Shown here piece by piece: positions 4,340 to 64,000 of a stretch of 64,000 bases of DNA (positions within the stretch are counted from its first letter, which is position 1; each line of letters begins with the position of its first letter). The DNA comes from Paraphysomonas bandaiensis (lineage: Eukaryota > Protista > Chrysophyceae). The notes under the pieces were generated by a model. That model saw only the letters and a program-made list of their open reading frames with translations, searched no databases and was not told where the DNA came from. The DNA is taken from NCBI GenBank assembly GCA_965644295.1, contig CBFFRP010000434.1:146634-210633 (forward strand), written 5' to 3'. The position numbers and the translations under genes were made by a program.

Positions 4340-6612
4340 TAATTAGGAGTTTCTGAAGAAGTTTCTTGTGTCTCTGAAAGGCGGACTCTCGCATCTCAGA
4401 GATGGAGGCGTGTGGACAATCACGACACTTATGTTTGAGAGAGTCAAGTCGAAAGCCACAATCAGAGCATCTGGCTTTGTCCAGGTCAAGTCCGAATTTT
4501 GTTTTGCCCTATTCCTGTCATTGCTGTAAGATATGCCATGTCAGGGCTGTATTGAGTATGCGTTGTCTTAGTTGTGAATTCTCCACTGTACTCCACTCTT
4601 CCGTGCCAATCTGGACTGATTGTCAGGCGGTACAGACGCGGACCAAAGAGGCCCTCTCACACAGACGGCGCGCCCTCGGAACAAAGCCCCAGGGAATATT
4701 TTACGAATGCCTCGCCACAGCTCTTAAACAGCGCCCAATAAAATGGACGCGCTCGCACCCCGAACGTAGAACACAAGATCAAAGCAACTGGACCTACAAC
4801 GGCATTTATATAGCTGACGCCGCCGCCAGCGGCGATTGGAAGACACTAGACAGAGTGCTCGGAGCCTCCAACTACAGTGTTGTCACAACTGACGCTACGC
4901 ACATACTGGATGAATTCTTCACCACGGGTCAATGGCACTGGCGAAGATACGATACACACCTCCTCACAGACCTCGGTCCCATGCTAGGAGACGTCACAGA
5001 TCTCCACCACCAGTGGGACCTCCATCAATACACCCTCCGACGAGATAGCATGTATGCTGCACAAACGCAGCGAGACCCGCAGTATTGGACACGCAGCGGA
5101 ACAAGGCTCCCACACAAGCTCCACCCCCTCCGTACCCATAACTCCTCCAAACACTACATCTCCCTCTCGCAGAGCGTATACGCGAGACGGCATACGTATG
5201 GGACAAATCCTTCGCAATGGGAAGAAACCGAGCCAAAGGAAAATCCGGACATGATCGCACAACGGCTTCCACATGCACAGATTGTGCACACCCCACAGAC
5301 AACATGGCGCACATGCTTCTCACCTGCACTCATCCTGACATCATTCATATACGTGAAGATGTCCACCAAGCACACCACAATAAGCTTGACAAACTTCGCA
5401 CACGCACGCTCCCCCATCCCTGGTTTTACACCGCCATAACCAAACTAGCCAAAGCCGCATGGAACCCAACCACCCCCCAGGTTGAGCGCTTACTAGACCG
5501 GCCACATTACTGCCACACAATTGGCCGACGCATTATTCGGACGCCACATATCCAGCTCACTGCTCGAACATCAATTCCACGCCCTAGAAAAATCCATCGC
5601 CTCTATCCTACTCCCCCTATATGATGGAGGGCTCCGCATGCTTCGCAATAGGGGATTCAGACACCACAACGCAGACACGGCACCGGCGACACCGGTCACG
5701 ACACATTCACAGCAACGCCAGTCCCAGGATACTCATCCGACACCAAAAATACTCCAACTACTCCAGGCAACATCCACTCCAAGAACTACACTCTCTGCAA
5801 GAGTCCAGACCCGACAGAGGCAAGCGCAACCACTCCGGAAACAACTCCTCTTTACTTGTGGCCGAAACCCCACCTCAACAACCAGCACCATCTCCACCAC
5901 CGACTTACACTCTCATATACATCTCGCCTCATCCACCCCTCACATAATCCATGGCACAGGCCCGCCAGACACATTGCCCAAAGGTAGACCCCCGACTAAC
6001 CTCAATACAAGGGACGGTTGCACCATGGTGCTCGCAGCGATGCACAAGCAGTCCCGAGACGGTTGCCCGCCACTAGTAGTATTTAGCAAATCTAGTTATT
6101 ACTGTAGTTAGTCTATAGATATAAACTAGTTTCTGTACACAACCGTTCTCATGTAATAATCAGACTTTCCTATATGTCTTAGTCTTAGTTGTGAACTGTT
6201 CTTGATCTTAGATCTGCCGCAGGCAGCCCAGCCATGTCCAGTTTGTGCGGAAGTAAGGCACCGCTACCTTTCCAGTACCCAGGCGCACAATCCAGATTAT
6301 GACCGAAGAGTTGATCACGGAGCGCAGGTAATTCTCTAAAATCTATTGATTGCGAAGAGATTGGAAATAAGTGATCATGGGGTGTGTAAGATACGACCGG
6401 CGTGTTCCGGACAGACGCCAGTGCCATATTCTGGACGTAAGTATACGTTCCATGACTCTGGCAACATCAATTTTACAGAAAGTGTAATTGTTTCGGCCTA
6501 GCATATGGTCAACCTCCAATCATTCATCCCCTGCAACCCCGTCTGCTATGTAGATTACTTTGTCTTCATACGTTCATTGAGATTCATCAGTAGTGCGACG
6601 CTTAGGGTGTGA
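4340..6612 (-). mobile_element. Old degenerate LINE (family B) RNase H/zinc-finger region, split by a younger antisense LINE insertion
   Basis: Minus strand 6612-6196 reads SHPKRRTTDESQ..YEDKVIYIADG..ALRDQLFGHN..PGYWKGSGALLPHKL. It resumes at 4578-4340 with CSDCGFRLDSLKH, collinear with the copy at 45.5-47.4 kb. Confidence 0.75.
4579..6175 (+). mobile_element. 5'-truncated LINE (family A): RNase H C-half, CxxC..H..C finger, PKGRPP end, 3' UTR; 14-bp TSD
   Basis: TSD GTCTTAGTTGTGAA at 4565-4578 and 6182-6195. Highly similar to the minus-strand copy at 25.6-27.5 kb. Frameshifted (ORFs 4402, 5217, 5521). Confidence 0.9.
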
Positions 6613-18080: not shown

Positions 18081-18682
18081 AGAATGGAAAATACAGCTTG
18101 TGGAGTGTTTGGTGATCTGATTTTGAAATTTGAGTCATATGTTTGTTTTAACTCGTGTATTATATTGAAGTCCCTTTCAAATGACTGTCAACATCATCAT
18201 GGCTAAGATTGAAGGTAGTTTCTGTTGAAACCGACTACTGAAGTTGAATACCCTTGTTTTCTCAGTGCTAATACCCATTTCGACATGAACATATCACCGT
18301 CCCTCAAGAAACCCTCAGGACCTCGATAACAACGCCGTCTCCGGCAACTTTACCTGTGCCGGAGGCCCAAACGGTGCACTGAGACAGAGCCATATTCCAA
18401 ATCTCAATCCACCTCTCTCAGCCTACACATCTAGCACTCGGTAAACTCAGGGCCTTAATACAGAACCCTGTACCTCCACAAAGCCCAATGGAGTCTCATC
18501 TCAAGGGGAGACCCCCTGATCGCACGCGCCAGTGAGTCCTTGGACACACGATCAAGGCGAACCTCACAATCGACATTAAGAACGGAAGTGGTCGCACCTT
18601 GGTGCTTGCGGCGACGCACAAGCAGCTTCTGTAGCGCTAAATAGTAGGATAATAGAGTGTGTACTGATTAGTTATGGGTTGT

Positions 18683-18766: not shown

Positions 18767-19137
18767 CAAACATAGTCAGCAGATATATTGTTCTGCCCAC
18801 TCATAGCCCACCAATAAGTGTCACTTGTATAGACGTCTTTGGGACCTGACGAATAAACAGGCATCCGGGAATGGGCCCACCTGAAGGGTAACCGGGGTAT
18901 TGGGCTGCATGCTGAAGTCAAGCATCCGGGATGTTCGCCTTAAGAACTCAGAGCGGAAGTGGTCGCACCTTGGTGCTTGCGGCGACGCACAAGCAGCTTC
19001 CGTAATGTTAAATAGTAGAATGAAAAAGTGTGTAGTGATTAGCTACAGGTAGAGGTCTAACTAGTTTGTCTAGCATTCATCTAGCTACTAAGCTGGTGCA
19101 AGTTTTTAACACCTACTGCTAATAATAAGACTTTCAA
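18684..19137 (+). mobile_element. Full-length non-autonomous SINE-like retroelement (ribozyme head, unique body, LINE 3' tail)
   Basis: TSD TATGGGTTGTTGGA at 18673-18686 and 19138-19151 (last 3 nt may belong to the element). The tail is shared with LINE family B. Confidence 0.85.
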
Positions 19138-41879: not shown

Positions 41880-42072
41880 TACGGAAGTGGTTGCACCTTG
41901 GTGCTTGCGGCGACGCACGAGCAGCTTCTGTAGCGTTAAATAGTAGGATAATGGAAATTGAACGGATTAGTTATGGGTAGAGGTCTAGCTAGTATGTCTA
42001 GCATTCAACTAGCCACTATATTGGTACAGGTTTCTAACGCCTATTGCTAATAAATAAAAAGACTTTCAATAT
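41880..42072 (+). mobile_element. LINE/SINE 3' tail fragment
   Basis: ACGGAAGTGGTTGCACCTTGGTGC...GACTTTCAATAT. Confidence 0.8.
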
Positions 42073-48648: not shown

Positions 48649-49380
48649 AAACCTAGAAACAGCGGTTATCGATCTACTTCATCCGCTTTATGCAACAGCG
48701 AAGCTAATGTTACCGGGTCGCGGCCGCCGTTATATCACTGCACACAAAGGACTCCCTAGGCTACCCCCGCGACCGCGTCAGAAACGGAGTCAGCCATGGA
48801 AACGTCCGAGAGTGCTACGTTACTAGGGGTCCACAGAAGACCTGCGACTGTGCCACCTCCCGCCTCACACACAAATCCCACCGACCTAATCCAATTTATC
48901 ACCGTCCAGACCCCACAAAGATGCCGTCTCCGGCAACTTCATCCACTCCCGAGGTCCAAAAAGAGCACAGCATCAGTGCCCATACATTCAACGCCTCCTC
49001 CCACCACTCTCTCTAACTCACAGCCCACCCACCAAGAACTCGGTACACTCAGGAGCTTAATACAAAACCTTGAGCCCCCTCCTAACCCAGTGGAGTCTCA
49101 TCCCAAGGGGAGACCTCCAGATCACACGCGCCGGTGAGTCCCAGGACACACGATCATGACGAGCCTTATAACACACACTAAGAACGGAAGTGGTCGCACC
49201 TTGGTGCTTGCGGCGACGCACAAGCAGCTTCTGTAGCGTTAAATAGTAGGATAAAAGAGTTTGTATTGATTAGTTACCACGGGTAGAGGTCAAAATAGTA
49301 TGTCTAGTATTCTTCTAGCCACCAGCCACTACATTGGTGCAGGTTTTCAACGCCTATTGCTAATAATAAGGCATTCAATA
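48649..49380 (+). mobile_element. 5'-truncated LINE family B end (PKGRPPDHTRR*), inserted in tandem at the 3' end of the previous element
   Basis: CATTCAATATATAACAATTA at 48629-48648 and 49372-49391. Confidence 0.85.
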
Positions 49381-49783
49381 TATAACAATTATAGATTAAA
49401 AGTATTTAAAAGGGATCCAAGCAGTCAGAACTAGATAAGTGCAATGTCCACTACGCATGTATGTATGTCTAAGTTAACGACAATGTAGCGCTCAAGAGAA
49501 ACTAGAGCAATAAATTTTCAATATATCAACGAGTTCATAGATTGGAAATCTGTATCGACACTCTGTATAGGATTAGTTAATTGCTGAAGAATAAATAAGA
49601 AGCTATGGTAATAATAAATAATGGATTTTAAAATAAATTCATGTAATACTATAGTTGAAACAAAAAAGAACATAATATATCGTATCCAAAGAGTAAAATA
49701 TATTGCTCACAGTACAAATCAATGGAATGTAAAAAACTATTAGGAATCATCTGCAGTCTCCAAAGGGATACATCAGACCATAT

Positions 49784-55427: not shown

Positions 55428-55899
55428 ATAGTACATATAATACCATAGTGATAGAGTAGGAAGCAAGTTAGATGGGTATGGCTGTGGCAGGGCATGAAAA
55501 TTTAAAGTGTTGAAAAACCAGCAATATACATAATATAACTAGATTTTATAAAAAAGCTTCAAAGTGTACTGTTTCGCGAGTGGACGGTGCGTTGGGCTCA
55601 CCTATCGCACACTATTCACTTTAGTTGTACAATATATATATATATATCACATCTTACAACACCTTACATTCACCCATTCTACAATTTGGTAATTTCATCT
55701 GCTGTTGCGCACAGCTAGCGCTTTTCAAAAGCACAGTGTAGATCGTATAACCTATAGTACAGCGAAACGTAACACTGTAGGGCATATGATTCGAATTAAG
55801 CCGTGTAATATATATAAGGAACTCAAGATCTTTCTCTGCCCTACGGTGGCAAATACCGTTCAACACAAAGTTTCACCTTATTAACCAGCTTTAAGCTCA

Positions 55900-58440
55900 A
55901 TGTCCCTATTAAGGGTATGGATGAGTCATGTCAGTGTGCCTAGGGCCTCTTCTCCCTCTCTTCGGCCACATTTTGCTGATCACCTCGTCTCCGACAAATC
56001 TCTTGTTTTACCACGTTGTACATGTTCCAAGCCTCACTGCCTGGCTTTGCGACTTCCACCCAACCTAACGGCTTCGGCTAAACCACGTGCCTGCACTAAT
56101 GCAGCGCTTACCGCATTCATATGCCATCACATCAATAGACATCATAGTCTCACCTATCGAATTCTACGGTTACAACCACTCAAAACGTGGCTCGTGCGAG
56201 CAGGTCCACGCAAAAGATCCTCTGGTGCTCTCCATATGGTCACAGAATACTCTCGAACCCTCACAACTGAGCTACAGGGCTGCCTCCTGATGTCCACACA
56301 AAACAACCCAACATGGTTTGTCTGTGGTCTATGCATCCAGCAGGTTACCCCCTCATTCTGTTCACCTATCACTCCCTCAGCCCATTCCTCTTATTGGACA
56401 GACACTGTATTCCGCATACGGTATATTCGGCTACTGTACTACAGTGCCCTACAGGATGTATACCACACAAAAACGGTGCTAGCATGCGGTACACCACGTA
56501 GCCCCGGACCCCATCAATACCCTACCAACACACACCCACTCAATCTTGCTGGTTATGAGTATATCACCTATGCAAGGCCCCAAAGTTCACGCTTAAGTCT
56601 CTTGCGTAACAACACTCGGTTCACATACAGATATACACCAACACCCTTTAGAAGCAACTTCGACACAATTTCAATGAAACGTGAAACAAATTCCAACACT
56701 TCCAGAACCTTCACCCCGAAGTTTGTTCTTCCCCCCTCCTATCAACCAACCAACATTGATGCGCAGATCAATAATGCTATCAGAGAACAGAAGAAAGCCA
56801 AAGCTGACACTCCCCAGCTACAGCTCCCATCGGTACGCACCTTTCTGGGATGGGAAAATGACCTACCTGTGGGAGAGTACAAAACACTCGTCCTTACAAA
56901 CATAAAAGCTGCTGATGATGCCACCTTCCTGGGGATAACACACTACCTTATCCATGAGTTGGGGTTTCCCATTCAACCCCCTACCCCCCAAGACATCGCT
57001 ACCTTCAGGGCAGCCAAGGATGCACGAACGTGTTCAGACTTACCCGCTCCCACAGCGAGTAGGGTAGTCCGAGCGTTCGACCTAGGCAGACCTGGGTACG
57101 AAGTCCGACAGGGCATGGGAGCGAATGTTACCGCTGACTCATGTATGTACTCCTCCCCTCTATGCTTTGACCTCCATGTAGAAACGGGCACATCAGTCGA
57201 TGACAAAGGCCTCCTTCGGACCGAACGCCGACATGTCCAGATATCACTTTTCCGAACGCCACGAGAACTCTTCGTGGGTCGCACCAAGGATGAGCCCTCG
57301 CTGATACCAGTGGCGGCTATATATGGGCTACATGCAGACTCAGCGCACACCAGACCTGCACATGCCTTTAGGTTACGAAACACGCTGGATATGCTTCTCC
57401 GAACGGGAGGTTTCCCCACGCCACCTCTATACGAAGTATTCTGGACTCTAACACACTATAGAGGCAAGACTCGAGCCACTGATAAAACATATAGGTTCTA
57501 TCAGATTCTATTACTCCACGATCCCATTCACGATCAGGATCTAAGAGCTAAATTCTATAAAGCACTCTTCAATAATGAAATAGGAGGACATGTCGAAATC
57601 AACCTCGGCTCACTCTGTTGTAGAATGGTCAGCACTGAAACACCCACGCAAAAGCAGTCCAACTGGACACCGTCTCAAGAACTCTTCCGCATCGCCGTCT
57701 GCTCTGAAACACTCCTATCTCCCATCCAAGTCTGGCAAGCCTGTGAGGCCATAGGTATCCCATCCACGGACATAGAGGACATCATTTGGACCGCCCGCAA
57801 CCCACTCACAAGCGGGCGCAAAGAAAAAGAACGCTTAGTTGAACAAACCTACATTTACCTTGACGACAGGAATACCAAGATCAAACTCTGTTGGGAAATC
57901 TCACGCACAGGTATCGTGCCTTTACTGCGCAAAGCTCTGGGTGACGAAACTCTAAGGCTCCTCTATCACACCATAGCAGTCCCCCCTGGCCTCCCTACTC
58001 AGCGGTTTCTATACGGCCTCCATAAGGCCCCAGACACAGCAACAAACGCCCCTCCCATAATACCGCCTCCAACGTCCCTTCAACCCTTCGGTCCAACTGT
58101 TGCTCCACAAATGCAGACCGATACACCGCGATCGTACACTCCCAAACGACAGCGACAGATGGACACATCCCCATCAACAGAGCCAGCACCAGCTCCCACC
58201 TGCCCAGAGCTCTGCGAAATAGCTCTACACATCGCTTCAGATCTTGTACCTCTGTCAAAAATCCATGCCATCCTCGCGCAAATGGAAAACGCGGTTGCAG
58301 CTCTCTATGAGATCGATGCTGGGGCGACTCTCACGGTACTTGATTACTATAAAAACAAGGTAGATCACAGTATCCCAGAAAGGTCCTCAGAAGAACACTC
58401 TCGGGTGGACTCGGACATCTTCGGCTCCGACTCCAACTGA
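55900..58440 (+). CDS. ORF1 of the giant LINE (true start may be ATG 56674); no recognised domain
   Basis: 846-codon intronless ORF upstream of ORF2. Confidence 0.65.
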   Translation: MSLLRVWMSHVSVPRASSPSLRPHFADHLVSDKSLVLPRCTCSKPHCLALRLPPNLTASAKPRACTNAALTAFICHHINRHHSLTYRILRLQPLKTWLVRAGPRKRSSGALHMVTEYSRTLTTELQGCLLMSTQNNPTWFVCGLCIQQVTPSFCSPITPSAHSSYWTDTVFRIRYIRLLYYSALQDVYHTKTVLACGTPRSPGPHQYPTNTHPLNLAGYEYITYARPQSSRLSLLRNNTRFTYRYTPTPFRSNFDTISMKRETNSNTSRTFTPKFVLPPSYQPTNIDAQINNAIREQKKAKADTPQLQLPSVRTFLGWENDLPVGEYKTLVLTNIKAADDATFLGITHYLIHELGFPIQPPTPQDIATFRAAKDARTCSDLPAPTASRVVRAFDLGRPGYEVRQGMGANVTADSCMYSSPLCFDLHVETGTSVDDKGLLRTERRHVQISLFRTPRELFVGRTKDEPSLIPVAAIYGLHADSAHTRPAHAFRLRNTLDMLLRTGGFPTPPLYEVFWTLTHYRGKTRATDKTYRFYQILLLHDPIHDQDLRAKFYKALFNNEIGGHVEINLGSLCCRMVSTETPTQKQSNWTPSQELFRIAVCSETLLSPIQVWQACEAIGIPSTDIEDIIWTARNPLTSGRKEKERLVEQTYIYLDDRNTKIKLCWEISRTGIVPLLRKALGDETLRLLYHTIAVPPGLPTQRFLYGLHKAPDTATNAPPIIPPPTSLQPFGPTVAPQMQTDTPRSYTPKRQRQMDTSPSTEPAPAPTCPELCEIALHIASDLVPLSKIHAILAQMENAVAALYEIDAGATLTVLDYYKNKVDHSIPERSSEEHSRVDSDIFGSDSN

Positions 58441-59251
58441 CTCCTACTGGACTGGGACACAACGAACATCAAACGTACACTCATAGAAGTGTCCGCAGCT
58501 GCTCACACGTGGTTATCCCCCAGTCCACACTTACATATCCATAGTTGGCCCTCACCTGACACAACGACCTTCGCCTGTAGCACCCACATGCGTCCACCAC
58601 GTAAACCGCCAGACAAACAGTCGAGATCCACCAGTGTACATCCCACGAAAAGGCACCAAGGACCGCACTTTTCCTGTGATAATAGTGGTGATGGACCACG
58701 AAAACGGCCGGCCTCGACACAACGTAAGCGAAACAACCTCCGGCGGCTCAGTCGCAAACGAACTCTGCAACAATTTCGTGAAGGAACAATCCAGTCCCTC
58801 CCTCCACACATACAACGTCAACAGACACGAAACAAGCTCCGCATCCGTGCCCACAACAAGCAAGCATGGCGAGAGCATTTACAACACCTGGCACAACAGT
58901 GTGTAGACACACACAACATCGTGACCACTCCTATACCTGACACAGCACCCACAGCTGTTACAGCACCCCCCGTCCAGAAGACTCCACACATACTATTTGC
59001 CTCCCTCCGCCCACAGTGGAGGACGAACAAGAGAGAACAATCACTGACACAAGTGTACTGCCTCAACTATTTGTGCCGCACCCTCTGCCAGCTGCCTTCA
59101 CGGACCCCGGACTGCAGAATTGGTCCTTCTACTCGCCCAGCGGTCTGTTAGCCATTGCCATACACGAAGAGGTGGTTCACAGTGTCATGTCCATGCTACA
59201 ATCGAGGCACGCTTTAGAACGCATAGAACAGCACCTCAGATGTTCGCTTGA

Positions 59252-62200
59252 GGAGGGAAAATGCTGGTTGCACGTCACTACACACACACAGAGTACAACA
59301 ACACACCAATGGAGGGCTTCTGCGGACTAGCTGCTATTGCCGCAATATACCACAAACAACCGGAGGAGGACCACTACCCGTATTTAAATCCCGATGATCC
59401 AGCCTCGAAAGCAAAACTGCTCCAAGTCATTCAGACAAGCAGGACGGTACTTAGTACCTACACGCTCGCTGAAGCCAAGATGCTTAACTTTGCATGCATC
59501 CGGAAGAAGCTCCGACAGCAGCTAACAACGTACAACAAAGCACTACGCCGCAAACGACCAACTGCTGTCGGAATACCCCCAGAGCAATGGGGCTACACAG
59601 ACATCATAGCCCTCCTGGCAGAAACCCTGAGTATACGAATTCGTATCTGGCAAGATTCACCAGTGGACCTTGGCCACAACTGGGCGTACTGGTCTACCCA
59701 CCATTCCTCCTTCCTTCCACAAACTCAATTCCTTCCATCTTATGATGTGTTTTGCTCCAACGACCACTTCTTCCTGGACACCAAATACCCGGTGGAGTTG
59801 GAACTACACGCGCTACTCGAGAGAATTCCTGACCTCGTCATCATGCGTCTCCAAAATGTGTTGCAATATCATTCCAAGGGAATGCAAGGAGTCCATCGTG
59901 CCAGGTCCATCAACCATCCCTCCCACGCCCTTCAGGGGAAGGAATTCTCTTCCGATAACAGCGGTGACGGACCCAGCAAATCCACCCACACATTACCCTT
60001 ACCCACTAAGGATGCCACCACACCGTATGCAACTCTATTTGACTATTTCCCAGTCAAACGGAGGCCACCTACCACCAACCCTACTCAACTGAACACCATG
60101 GGAACTCCAGCATTAGCCCCAGACGGCCCATCCTCACACTCCACTACCACTCCTGACATCAGGCCGGATGCACTGCCCAAGGACATTGCCACACACCCCC
60201 GACACTACACAGAGGGCTGGGGTCACACGCCCTTTCACTCCGATCTGCTGAACAACTGGGTTAGATATGATGAAACCCAAACCATTGCTGCCTCCCCACA
60301 GGGAAACCTTTTAAAAGAAATATATGCACACATGCTATCCCCTGCCTGTACAGACATATGGGAAGGATTCATAGCCAAGGCTTCCAGGACGGACAACTAT
60401 GATCTCATGATATCATTCACGCTACCAGAGCACAAATTGGATACCACGCACAGCGCCCTACTAGTTGCCCAGCATCTCGCGAATGGCAACAAACCCTGGG
60501 CAGACTCCACTCATGTTGTATCTAGGCATGTGCGGACCCTTTGCCTGACAAAGGGTATTCCCTCAACAGCCACTGTTAGTCTCCGTAAGACACTCATGCA
60601 ATATGAATCCTCGACTCCACACACAGGACTACATCTAGACACGGAGGATTTCCAACTGCTACTCGATCTTCTCTCCATACCATACAGACTATGGGACGCT
60701 GTTCAACCGCACCTGGCGCCTGGTTGGGCACAGCTGTCACCATTCTCCAGACAGGCACTAACAGTGCACGCTTCTACCAACACTGTGGTAACCCATGACA
60801 TCATACGCAGCCAGCATGGGTTTCACATACTCAATGCAACAAATATCCCCACCTGCATCATGCACGCTCTAACACGGACTCAGGAGCGGCTATCCTGTTT
60901 TCTACAACACCAGACCTCCAGACAGAGCACCAACATCCTCTGGACTTCTGAGCCGTCAACTGTACCACCTATGCTACATGAGCACAGAGAGCAACAGGAA
61001 CAGAGGGAAGTAATTGCAGTCTCCTTGTCACCGAGAGCTCGACGTCAACTACGACAGATGAACCCCACGGACCGTCGACAACTCAGGCTCCATATGTGCG
61101 ACATGAGCAGAGTCTACCGCCTCACCCTCAGACCCTCAGCCCTTCGCACACAACAACATATCCCTAGTGATGGGTACTGCGCATACAGCACACTCTATCA
61201 TCTGCACATTCTTGCTTCAAGCAGGCGACACACTCGCTCCTGTCTGAAATTAGACCTCAAACAACGCAAGGACCGTCACACGCTAGCATCTTTCATAAAT
61301 ACATTAGGCACCCAAGCGTTCGACATAATGCAACGGGAGTGCATGGCCCATCACACACTTCAGCCACTACGACATAAGTTAGATCACGCACAGGCCGCAC
61401 TTTTAATACCTACCAAAACAACATACACTACGGAAGACGACATAACTCACTGGCTCTCAGTGCGAGAGGTCCACCTTTTAGCCTCTACTATCAACCCCTG
61501 CACGACGTGGGCGCAAAATGGTAATTACCTCAGCATTGTAGGCATCCCTACTGACAAAGTAGCTTATAACATCGCATGGAAGGTGGACGAACTTAGGGAC
61601 GCTATTCGTGATAACTACTACCATGTCATACTACAAGATGCTCACTACTTCCTCTTAGACCCTGCCGGTCTTTCTACTGCCCTAGACAACGCCTTACTAT
61701 CTCTTGAAAACACCTTGGCCACCAGTATACTCTCAACGGCTGACCCCATCGCTCCACCTACACTTCCCGCGGACTCAATCACGAACAACAATAGGACATC
61801 AAAGATGACCAGCACCAGAACAACCTCGTCAAGCAGCACCAAGTTAGCACGAACAAATCGACAGATTCTGCAGGCTTCAACCCCTGGAGCACTACCATCG
61901 AACAAGAAGATGCAGTTGAAACACGCCCAAACTGCGTTGACAAGTCGATGCCAGCCAACCCGGAAAGCCAAAAAGGTCGTAAATTACGATGAAAGTGACC
62001 AACCAACGAACCTTCACAACTCACACCCAACCACGACCACACGAACGATCAGACCAACTCCAGCACTAGATACCACCGGCTGGGACAGGGACTGGTCAAG
62101 AAAGTTCTACATTGCGTACGCCGATAACACTGCCAAAGGACTATCCCTTTATGCGAAGAACACATTCCCAGCAGACGTCATCATTGCTGAGTACAAAGGC

Positions 62201-64000
62201 AAACGCTATCCACTAACAAAGATGAGTCAGTCTACAAGGCGTTCTGATTACATAGTTCAAGACAGTACTGGTACCTTCGCAATAGATGGCTTTGACCAAG
62301 TCCGACAATGTGTAACATGCGAAGCTGGGTATATTAATGACCCCCTAGCCACAAACATGGCTAATGTCAAGTTTGTCACGAAAAATAAACGCCTCTATGT
62401 CCGTACAATACGCTCCATTGCTAAGGATGAAGAACTTCTCATCAACTACGGACATCATTATTGGTGTGATCAACGCTGGCCACTTGGGATATTAATCCAA
62501 GCCAGGGCTGCGTACGACAGCGACATAGGCGGTGCCAATATAGCAGTATGGGACAGACTCCTTGCAGACAAGAGTGGAACTCCTACAGAGACCTCCAGCA
62601 GCATCCCCAAGGATCCCTCGGGAGCAGCCATGGGACTCCGACTCTCCACATGGAACACAAATGGCAATCCGGCATCACACACAGGTAAAGCCCAAGCTAT
62701 CATCCGACACTTTAAGCGGCAAAAATTGGACGTGCTCCTATTACAGGATGTCCGTCTAACAGAAACTCAGGCCAACTTCTTCACGCGTATCATCGAAGAT
62801 GCACTCCAGGGAACAAGAATATGCCTCTTCCTCAGCAAGCAGCCAAAACTGACTTCAAGAGACCCACTAATGGGGGGTACAGTAGTCATAATCAGCGAAT
62901 ACTGGAAGCGCCGTCTCGCCTTCACAAAGGCTGACTTTACGGGACTTGGTTTAGTGAGCCGACTAGAGTTCAAAACGTCGGTGGCGCACACCCTAGTACT
63001 AATAAGCGTCTATCTACCCCCGAAGCCATCCACGCCAGGCACTTGCACATTATGGAGCAAATTGACCAAGCTAGGGAGAGCGTCCCGTGGTATCTGTACT
63101 GCTGACCCCTACAAGCTCCTATGCAACATCCTTACGAAATGGGTCACTAAAGCCAGAGCCAAGGACCATACTGTCATTGTCGCCGGCGACTTCAATGGCT
63201 CCATGGAGACAAATCCTAAAGGCAGAGACATACGACAACTTGCCGACAAACTCCAACTGGCTGCACCACTCCATGAGCTTCTCCTACCCAGGAAAACATA
63301 TCATACCTTCCACAGATTAGACAAAGGAATATCGCGGATCGATCATATTCTACACACGCCGTTACCTCCGAACATGTCTGTTACGGACACTGGCTGCCTT
63401 GACTCCCCCTCATTACTCGCAGCAGCCTTCGATCATCGACCGGTCTGGGTCGGTTTCACCGTACCAGTCAATCTTGACCCTCGACCACCGGAGTCGCACC
63501 TCCGAATCCCCCCCCGTCTCAATGTAAACCCGAAGGACTCCAAGGAAGTACAGGCATACACCGCAAGACTCCTCCAACTTCATGCACAACTACCACATTT
63601 AGACAACGGATCGACTGCCATACTCCCTCCTGAGGTGGCAGCCAACAGACTAGCGGCCATCCATCACATAACCCTCCAGGCTTCGCTTGAGGCGAAGCGT
63701 CCTGCATGTACACATAGCACACGCCTACACGAACGTTGTCAGCGCACACGCTCAAAGTTCAAGAATGGCTTTTCCCCGGAAATGAGAGTAATACAGGAAG
63801 GAATGCTCATGGTTTTGCGGATTATCCAAAAGATGTTCAATTCTGCTGGATACAAACGGCATGGATGGCGCGGCCCCCCGGCAACCACCCCCACCCACGA
63901 AATCATCACTGCATGGTTCGCCCGATGGGACTCCTATCTCCAGGAGTTCTCAGGGTCACATCAAAGGCATATCGGACATCAACTTCTGGTGCAGCCACCG
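59252..64000 (+). CDS. ORF2 polyprotein (partial): OTU-like, degenerate OTU-like, OTU-like, SET, APE endonuclease
   Basis: Hand translation of frame +2 finds no stop in 1583 codons. OTU1: TPMEGFCGLAAIA..QWGYTDIIALLAETLSIRIRIW..NDHFF. OTU3: IPSDGYCAYSTL..HWLSVREVHLLA..QDAHYF. SET: KGLSLYAK..IIAEYKG..AGYIND..EELLINYGHHYW. APE: STWNTNG, LLLQD, SVYLPP, AGDFN, SRIDHI, FDHRPV. Confidence 0.9.

Follow-up and report, generated by a model that had tools for sequence, protein, structure and literature searches.

The stretch analysed here, 64,000 nucleotides of the genome of the chrysophyte Paraphysomonas bandaiensis (the window; contig CBFFRP010000434.1, positions 146,634 to 210,633 of the forward strand), ends in a copy of a long interspersed element (LINE) whose second open reading frame (ORF2) carries a SET domain just upstream of an APE-type endonuclease (Table 1). 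The endonuclease domain begins 65 residues past the SET domain, in the same open frame. The contig stops where the window stops, at position 64000, and this copy thus lacks the rest of the linker behind the endonuclease, the reverse transcriptase (RT) and the tail; a sister copy (C352) runs on into an RT domain (Pfam RVT_1) and a 3′ tail, its open frame closing after 2348 codons. In the C352 fragment RVT_1 occupies residues 470–763, and for residues 384–573, upstream of and overlapping the start of the RT, the nearest solved structure is human L1 ORF2p (5e-8). RVT_1 is also present in the 3021-residue ORF of a second subfamily, A2, described below. Exo_endo_phos followed by RT in a single ORF is the arrangement of an APE-type LINE.

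We found a 2-kb segment spanning the SET and APE domains in at least 40 copies, at 92–100% identity, in the 62.6-Mb assembly, many of them at contig ends. The copies are dispersed, share their 3′ part and are truncated to varying extents at the 5′ end, as is typical of LINEs. Matches to other copies set in at query positions 1026–1033 of window segment 54800–57200, which places a shared 5′ end at about 55826, and 5′-truncated copies break off at window positions 60890 (C352) and 56955 (C132). Because full-length copies share a 5′ end and others are 5′-truncated, the SET-APE repeat is a young APE-type LINE of roughly 12 kb. With the APE domain in the same frame, RVT_1 in a sister copy and this copy number, the original prediction, made from the window alone, was right to place the SET domain inside a retrotransposon ORF. 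All comparisons reported here are between natural copies.

The SET core, which had been estimated at about 120 residues, comprises 121, with motifs I to IV as listed in Table 1. Searched in isolation, these residues match the Pfam SET profile PF00856 over residues 13–117 and over the full length of the profile (1–105), with an E-value of 1.6e-10 and a score of 41.8 bits, the cut-off being 22.4. The PR-type profile PRDM2_PR (PF21549) reaches 27.9 bits with the isolated domain (cut-off 27) and 21.8 bits, below the cut-off, within the ORF. Motif IV includes EELLINYG (62429–62452) with the Tyr at the catalytic position. Cys clusters are absent both before and after the core, in agreement with the original prediction; a conserved helix instead flanks the domain on its C-terminal side, and in the alignment with SET7/9 it falls on the helical region at the C-terminus (chain residues up to 364).

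AlphaFold2, run with 140 aligned relatives, returned a model with a predicted local distance difference test score (pLDDT) of 91.9 and a predicted template modelling (TM) score of 0.87, superseding a run with 11 sequences that had reached a pLDDT of only 68. Foldseek searches of the PDB with this model gave SET and PR domains exclusively, at probability 1.00, with TM-scores of 0.69–0.71 to SET7/9. Matches from Foldseek and VIA-align included SET7/9, MLL, SETD8 and PRDM9, and the best matches in the ESM Atlas were small bacterial SET domains and PRDM12 (TM 0.69–0.73). The modelled SET beta-fold, including the C-terminal motif region, thus appears to be in place, judged by fold-match scores, and the structural check that had been proposed turned out in favour of a SET domain. 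The SET domain is genuine and lies within a genuine retrotransposon ORF, a chance match being excluded. It is of the compact type that lacks pre- and post-SET regions, and in the model a helix closes it at the C-terminus, as it does in SET7/9 and SETD8.

Table 1. Features of the LINE copy and its SET domain (window positions), and two gypsy ORFs bearing SET domains (positions within their loci).
Feature	Position	Strand	Basis or remarks
LINE copy, subfamily A1	55826..64000	+	5′ end ~55826–55832; start inferred from sister-copy match boundaries
ORF1, 846 aa	55900..58440	+	ORF list; no recognisable family
ORF2 open frame	59252..64000	+	Frame scan; first ATG 59261; at least 1583 aa, ends with contig
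SET core, 121 residues	62102..62464	+	Translation; Pfam envelope 62138–62452 (ORF2 residues 963–1067)
Motif I, KGLSLYA	62135..62155	+	Consensus AGxGLFA; second Gly replaced by Ser
Motif II, EYKG	62189..62200	+	Tyr in 139/147 and Gly in 144/147 relatives
Motif III, GYINDPL	62327..62347	+	Asn in 139/147 relatives; Asp replaces canonical His
Motif IV, EELLINYGHHYW	62429..62464	+	Catalytic-position Tyr in 146/147 relatives, then G..YW; Trp in 134/147
C-flanking conserved helix, RWPLGILIQARAAY	62474..62515	+	In place of Cys-rich post-SET; helix at model residues 138–147
APE-type endonuclease (Exo_endo_phos), ORF2 residues 1133–1370	62648..63361	+	PF03372, E 5.3e-10
Ty3/gypsy Pol ORF, 1947 aa	L058:3217-9057	-	SET between RNase H and integrase
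Ty3/gypsy Pol ORF, 1526 aa	L059:2178-6755	+	SET between RNase H and integrase

ORF1 has no match in Pfam or NCBIfam; its first 190 residues are common to subfamilies A1 and A2, at 66% identity (blastp against the A2 ORF). Subfamily A2 (L060, G000:C440:4000-13900, minus strand) lacks window 56466–59678 and is about 98% identical from 59679 onward, and in it the N-terminus of ORF1 (190 residues; window 55832–56465) is joined in frame to ORF2 from 59679, forming one ORF of 3021 residues. Intact sister copies have ORF2 open frames of 2348–3021 residues. The 950 residues of ORF2 upstream of the SET domain matched nothing in Pfam or NCBIfam, and the N-terminal 240 residues (window 59261–59980, with the motif GFCGLAAIAAIYH) had no Pfam match at E ≤ 1. 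By language-model features, the clusters nearest to these 240 residues are ones with an OTU domain in about one fifth of their members (score 0.92, recognition below threshold), a weak lead towards an OTU-like protease.

Elsewhere in the genome, three family-A SET matches are spaced regularly by 2178 bp (C505:58045-62715, G000), as if an internal segment of the element were repeated there in tandem. In the window itself, stretches at 48650–49384, 4897–5285 (minus strand), 18409–18679, 18950–19136 and 41881–42053 are 77–87% identical to the 3′ tail of the LINE, for which the C352 copy past its ORF2 stop served as reference; these are related LINE tails or elements resembling short interspersed elements that borrow the tail.

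The N-D subfamily and its carriers

A profile built from nine transposon-borne SET domains was searched against 1.84 billion representative proteins and yielded 15,283 proteins with an E-value of 1e-3 or lower, 2,303 of them at E ≤ 1e-10. Motifs were tallied over 147 of the best 150 relatives, those aligning over the domain. The residue that follows the Asn of motif III is Asp in 128 of these 147 and His in six, and an alignment with EHMT2 sets this Asn-Asp (N-D) over Asn-His (N-H). Judged from these alignments, N-D marks out a large SET subfamily, as yet uncharacterised. As it is the norm of the subfamily, the NDP of the window copy is no lesion of that copy; the original prediction had read NDP correctly at the position of the NHS motif, but the residue is not the one-off variant that it was taken for.

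A word-based search with the isolated 161-residue SET domain returned no relatives, whereas the long-ORF query and the exhaustive profile search did find them. The closest stand-alone SET relatives are all metagenomic proteins, and an integrase occurs in only three of 95 mid-sized relatives; therefore, the N-D subfamily is not confined to transposons. By profile, the closest PDB entries are EHMT2 (3.4e-13), MLL3/4, SET1, EZH2, PRDM9 and SETD7, all of the N-H or PR type, and the subfamily bears on the question of which SET residues catalysis truly requires. Two metagenomic giant proteins, P0020 and P0025, combine ND-type SET domains with a PRMT5 arginine methyltransferase, and P0025 adds a DOT1-like domain.

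Searching the genome with PF00856 gave 126 matches. The SET type of the window recurs in four further LINE families of this genome, and the matches sampled include families B, C and D, with the order SET-APE-RT. The SET region of family B matches the metagenomic protein P0001, which carries SET and APE and is 69% identical to the window element over the SET-APE stretch (ORF2 residues 920–1400). The SET region of family C is identical to P0002, in which SET and APE are followed by an RT in the next ORF (48% identity over the same residues). P0003 keeps the SET domain, also with the RT in the next ORF, at 27% identity over this stretch and 30% within the SET domain. Other orders occur as well: P0166, a LINE that is 25% identical over APE and RT, reads APE-RT-Ulp1-SET, P0079 reads RNase H-RT-SET-OTU-Ulp1, and bona fide Ulp1 or OTU proteases are joined with SET in P0079, P0085 and P0166.

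Additionally, two gypsy families of the same genome, E and F, carry an ND-type SET domain between RNase H and integrase, a placement also seen in the metagenomic gypsy polyproteins P0030, P0054 and P0116. In P0030 and P0116, an N-terminal Exo_endo_phos domain accompanies the SET domain that precedes the integrase. We built a maximum-likelihood tree from 140 SET domains, in which the five SETs that LINEs of this genome carry form one clade (Shimodaira–Hasegawa-like approximate likelihood ratio test, SH-aLRT, 99), and all gypsy SETs, including the metagenomic ones, form a separate clade of 18 rows (SH-aLRT 99). Both are nested in a 72-row group (SH-aLRT 92) together with many stand-alone SET proteins. 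Sampled host SET genes are canonical N-H enzymes or otherwise unlike the element SET. The simplest reading of this distribution is an early capture of SET modules from one subfamily, in one or two events, followed by inheritance in a LINE lineage and a gypsy lineage with some domain shuffling.

Other SET-like sequences were seen in mobile or repeated contexts of this genome. LINE family D (a 3731-residue ORF on C644) has a second, far more divergent SET domain near its N-terminus (L053:253-750, plus strand; L054 and L055; G000:C644, C566, C505), in which motif III reads N-T, motif IV reads DYGDGHL without the Trp, and a long insert is present. Multi-copy ORFs of about 230–270 residues (L077, L078 and L079; G000:C564, C338 and C51) contain a different SET-like domain (GRFVNT..., EELLADYG) and may be another transposon-associated SET gene.

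Selection and possible expression

We compared A1 with B, and C with D, by the proportions of non-synonymous and synonymous differences (pN and pS) with Fisher tests, and estimated their ratio omega by the Nei–Gojobori method (NG86). Between A1 and B, the SET domain has a pN of 0.19 and a pS of 0.66 (Fisher p 2e-15, omega about 0.13), and the 87-residue linker just upstream has a pN of 0.39 and a pS of 0.63 (Fisher p 0.002, omega about 0.42), so that the SET domain is the more constrained of the two (contrast in pN, p 5e-7). Between C and D, the SET domain has a pN of 0.15 and a pS of 0.76 (Fisher p 2e-26), with omega not computable as the synonymous rate dS is saturated; because of this saturation the omega values are approximate, their direction not being in doubt. 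The SET domain is under purifying selection between LINE families, and the neutral evolution that the original prediction had considered as the counter-case is not seen between the transposing lineages.

Within family A, 28 of the 29 other copies keep the SET domain free of stops and indels. Variants shared between copies (five non-synonymous, four synonymous) are too few to decide alone. Those confined to single copies, 14 non-synonymous and one stop against five synonymous, with 22% synonymous expected, look neutral, as would be expected if copies are dead on arrival after insertion. As the within-family variants are too few, the verdict on selection rests on the between-family comparisons.

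The element stretch is present in many marine metagenomes and in sequencing runs of three coded organisms. Contigs of polyA-selected marine metatranscriptomes cover parts of the element at 95–99% identity, including part of the SET domain (62031–62384). The match of these contigs to the window breaks off precisely at the A2-type junction, position 59679, and the form in the RNA libraries is therefore A2-like.

Possible functions of the SET module

We lean moderately towards a functional SET module, maintained by selection, that is an active methyltransferase acting on chromatin, as far as its sequence allows a judgement, and the LINE lineage probably supplies a protein- or chromatin-modifying enzyme of its own. 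Activity is the favoured prediction because the catalytic Tyr and the Asn of the S-adenosylmethionine (SAM) pocket are conserved. To judge by the relatives of the core that have been characterised, all of which suggest the same by analogy, a histone tail or chromatin protein would be the likeliest substrate. In the mechanism that we propose, the SET domain would be translated as a segment of ORF2 shortly before the APE endonuclease and the RT. It would bind SAM and methylate a lysine on a histone tail or other chromatin protein, acting on or close to the chromatin of the element itself or the site of its integration. Such methylation would either counter silencing or mark the insertion, and so alter the host's handling of the element. 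The adjacency to the endonuclease, or to the integrase in gypsy elements, suggests that the SET domain acts on the chromatin of the new copy or at the integration complex, and the protease-like modules might release the SET domain as a separate protein. Physical coupling to the endonuclease would not be required, since related LINEs place the SET domain after the RT.

Several observations weigh against such a chromatin-directed enzyme. Motif III of the window reads N-D-P and not the canonical N-H-S. The second Gly of motif I, kept in 137 of the 147 relatives, is replaced in the LINE families, by Ser in A and B and by Ala in C and D (G-N-A), although small residues may be tolerated there. No solved ND-type SET domain is among the closest PDB matches, and we know of no characterised ND-type SET. 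The nearest enzymes differ in their targets, being EHMT2 (histone H3 lysine 9, H3K9), MLL/SET1 (H3K4) and EZH2 (H3K27) by profile and SET7/9 and SETD8 by structure, and specificity thus appears unreadable from sequence. Also, the metatranscriptome data fit transcription of A2-like copies; being assembled contigs from RNA libraries, they are not proof of it.

The change of His to Asp in motif III, and of GxG to GxS or GxA in motif I of these LINE families, would suit a pseudo-enzyme or reader, whose SET fold would bind a histone tail or chromatin protein and tether the endonuclease and RT (in gypsy elements, the integrase) in the manner of the chromovirus chromodomain; such tethering would fit the place of the SET domain, which immediately precedes APE in families A–D and the integrase in gypsy families E and F. 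We nevertheless consider a reader unlikely, as thousands of relatives show next to no variation at the catalytic-position Tyr, the SAM-pocket Asn and the aromatic positions, which is unexpected for a pure binding module, and as the SET domain of related LINEs lies far from the endonuclease, past the RT and Ulp1 or OTU (P0166, P0079). The original prediction had named an active methyltransferase and a reader that targets integration as its two options; the conserved Tyr and Asn favour the former, and the SET domains located behind the RT weaken strictly endonuclease-coupled targeting. A quite unlikely variant of the enzymatic option is a methyltransferase with a non-chromatin substrate, such as the element's own ORF1 and ORF2 proteins or a host defence or ubiquitin/SUMO-pathway factor, working alongside the protease-like modules. 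Its appeal lies in the nearest structures, SET7/9 and SETD8, which have many non-histone substrates, and in the pairing of SET with Ulp1 and OTU proteases in P0079, P0085 and P0166. Similarly, a Phytophthora proto-Helentron joins SET, OTU and endonuclease (PMC4067079). The closest sequence-profile matches, however, are all histone methyltransferases.

LINEs and Helitron-like elements transduce host sequence, and the SET domain might accordingly be a passenger, a host gene fragment picked up and functionless for the element. Gene capture by Helentrons is discussed in PMC4067079. Such a passenger is highly improbable here, given that 28 of the 29 other copies keep the SET domain intact and in frame, and that this domain is retained across LINE lineages down to 27–30% identity, has an omega (about 0.13) under that of the neighbouring linker, and finds no close counterpart among the sampled host SET genes, which are of the N-H type. 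We rejected this explanation, as the selection and retention data contradict it.

The reading that we prefer, an active methyltransferase acting on chromatin, can be extended to a possible, though doubtful, larger picture: a guild of protist retroelements, comprising at least one LINE lineage and one gypsy lineage in this genome and distant metagenomic relatives with Ulp1 or OTU, would long have kept an active N-D SET domain with which they mark chromatin at or around their own insertions, thereby evading silencing or choosing or marking integration sites. If true, this would amount to a retrotransposon-encoded histone-writing system parallel to the DNA cytosine methyltransferases (DNMTs) of retrotransposons. 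Transposons are commonly viewed as targets, not authors, of histone methylation, with few known exceptions, namely chromodomains that read marks, DNMTs captured by retrotransposons, the SET gene of an oomycete Helentron and the domesticated SETMAR. A SET domain under selection in LINE ORF2 and gypsy Pol would extend self-carried epigenetic writers to the methylation of lysines in histones or other proteins, and the window SET would offer a tractable enzyme for studying the manipulation of host chromatin by mobile elements. The histone H3 genes of the host were located in the genome.

Comparison with known systems

We did not find a SET domain in a LINE or long terminal repeat (gypsy) polyprotein described in the literature, of which most subscription journals and the Repbase reports lay outside our coverage, so that an earlier description is possible. 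Among cellular enzymes, SET7/9 and SETD8 are likewise compact lysine methyltransferases without Cys-rich pre- or post-SET regions. They are 17–19% identical to the window SET and differ from it in being N-H enzymes encoded by host genes, whereas the window SET is of the N-D type and part of a retrotransposon polyprotein. SUV39/EHMT-type enzymes have flanking zinc clusters; because the window SET has none, it is no member of that type, although EHMT2 is its best PDB profile match. PRDM proteins such as PRDM9 and PRDM12 carry an array of C2H2 zinc fingers, and as no zf-C2H2 match occurs anywhere in the window ORF, the window SET is no PRDM either. In the tree, a representative with PR domain and zinc fingers (P0049) falls on the opposite side of the midpoint root from the transposon clades, a placement that is unsure given its long branch and SH-aLRT of 33.

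The SET domains of viruses and bacteria are similar in size and fold. Matches in the BFVD to Medusavirus, Megaviridae, Bodo saltans virus and a phaeovirus have TM-scores of 0.6–0.65, bacterial SET clusters reach 0.69–0.72, and Legionella LegAS4 (LegAS4/RomA) was recovered by the profile search. Like the window SET, these viral and bacterial domains are carried by a genetic parasite or pathogen. The minimal SET domains of this kind (PBCV-1 vSET type, giant-virus and Legionella) are, however, only 13–22% identical to the window SET, and none is fused to a reverse transcriptase or endonuclease; the motif of PBCV-1 vSET is the canonical N-H.

Like the window ORF, SETMAR unites SET with an enzyme of transposon origin in a single protein. 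It is a single-copy, domesticated host SET gene fused to a mariner DNA transposase, whereas the window SET is part of a mobile, young, multi-copy LINE and is fused to APE and RT; for this reason the window SET is not SETMAR-like, and the original prediction rightly treated SETMAR as a different case. One of the two nearest precedents for the arrangement is the proto-Helentron of Phytophthora infestans, also a stramenopile transposable element bearing a small SET domain (about 153 residues). This SET has an ORF to itself and is said to be similar to Clr4 (Thomas et al. 2014, PMC4067079). OTU-like proteases and an APE-type endonuclease occur in Helentrons as well (PMC4067079). The proto-Helentron is, however, a rolling-circle DNA transposon with a Rep/helicase, and the window SET is an in-frame domain of LINE ORF2, or of gypsy Pol in the other families.

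The other precedent is the gain of DNA cytosine methyltransferases by retrotransposons of dinoflagellates and charophytes (de Mendoza et al. 2018, PMC5890265). There the writer acts on DNA, and SET domains are unmentioned in that paper (PMC5890265). The logic is nevertheless shared with the window LINE, in that an epigenetic writer was acquired into the polyprotein and kept in element lineages of protists or algae.

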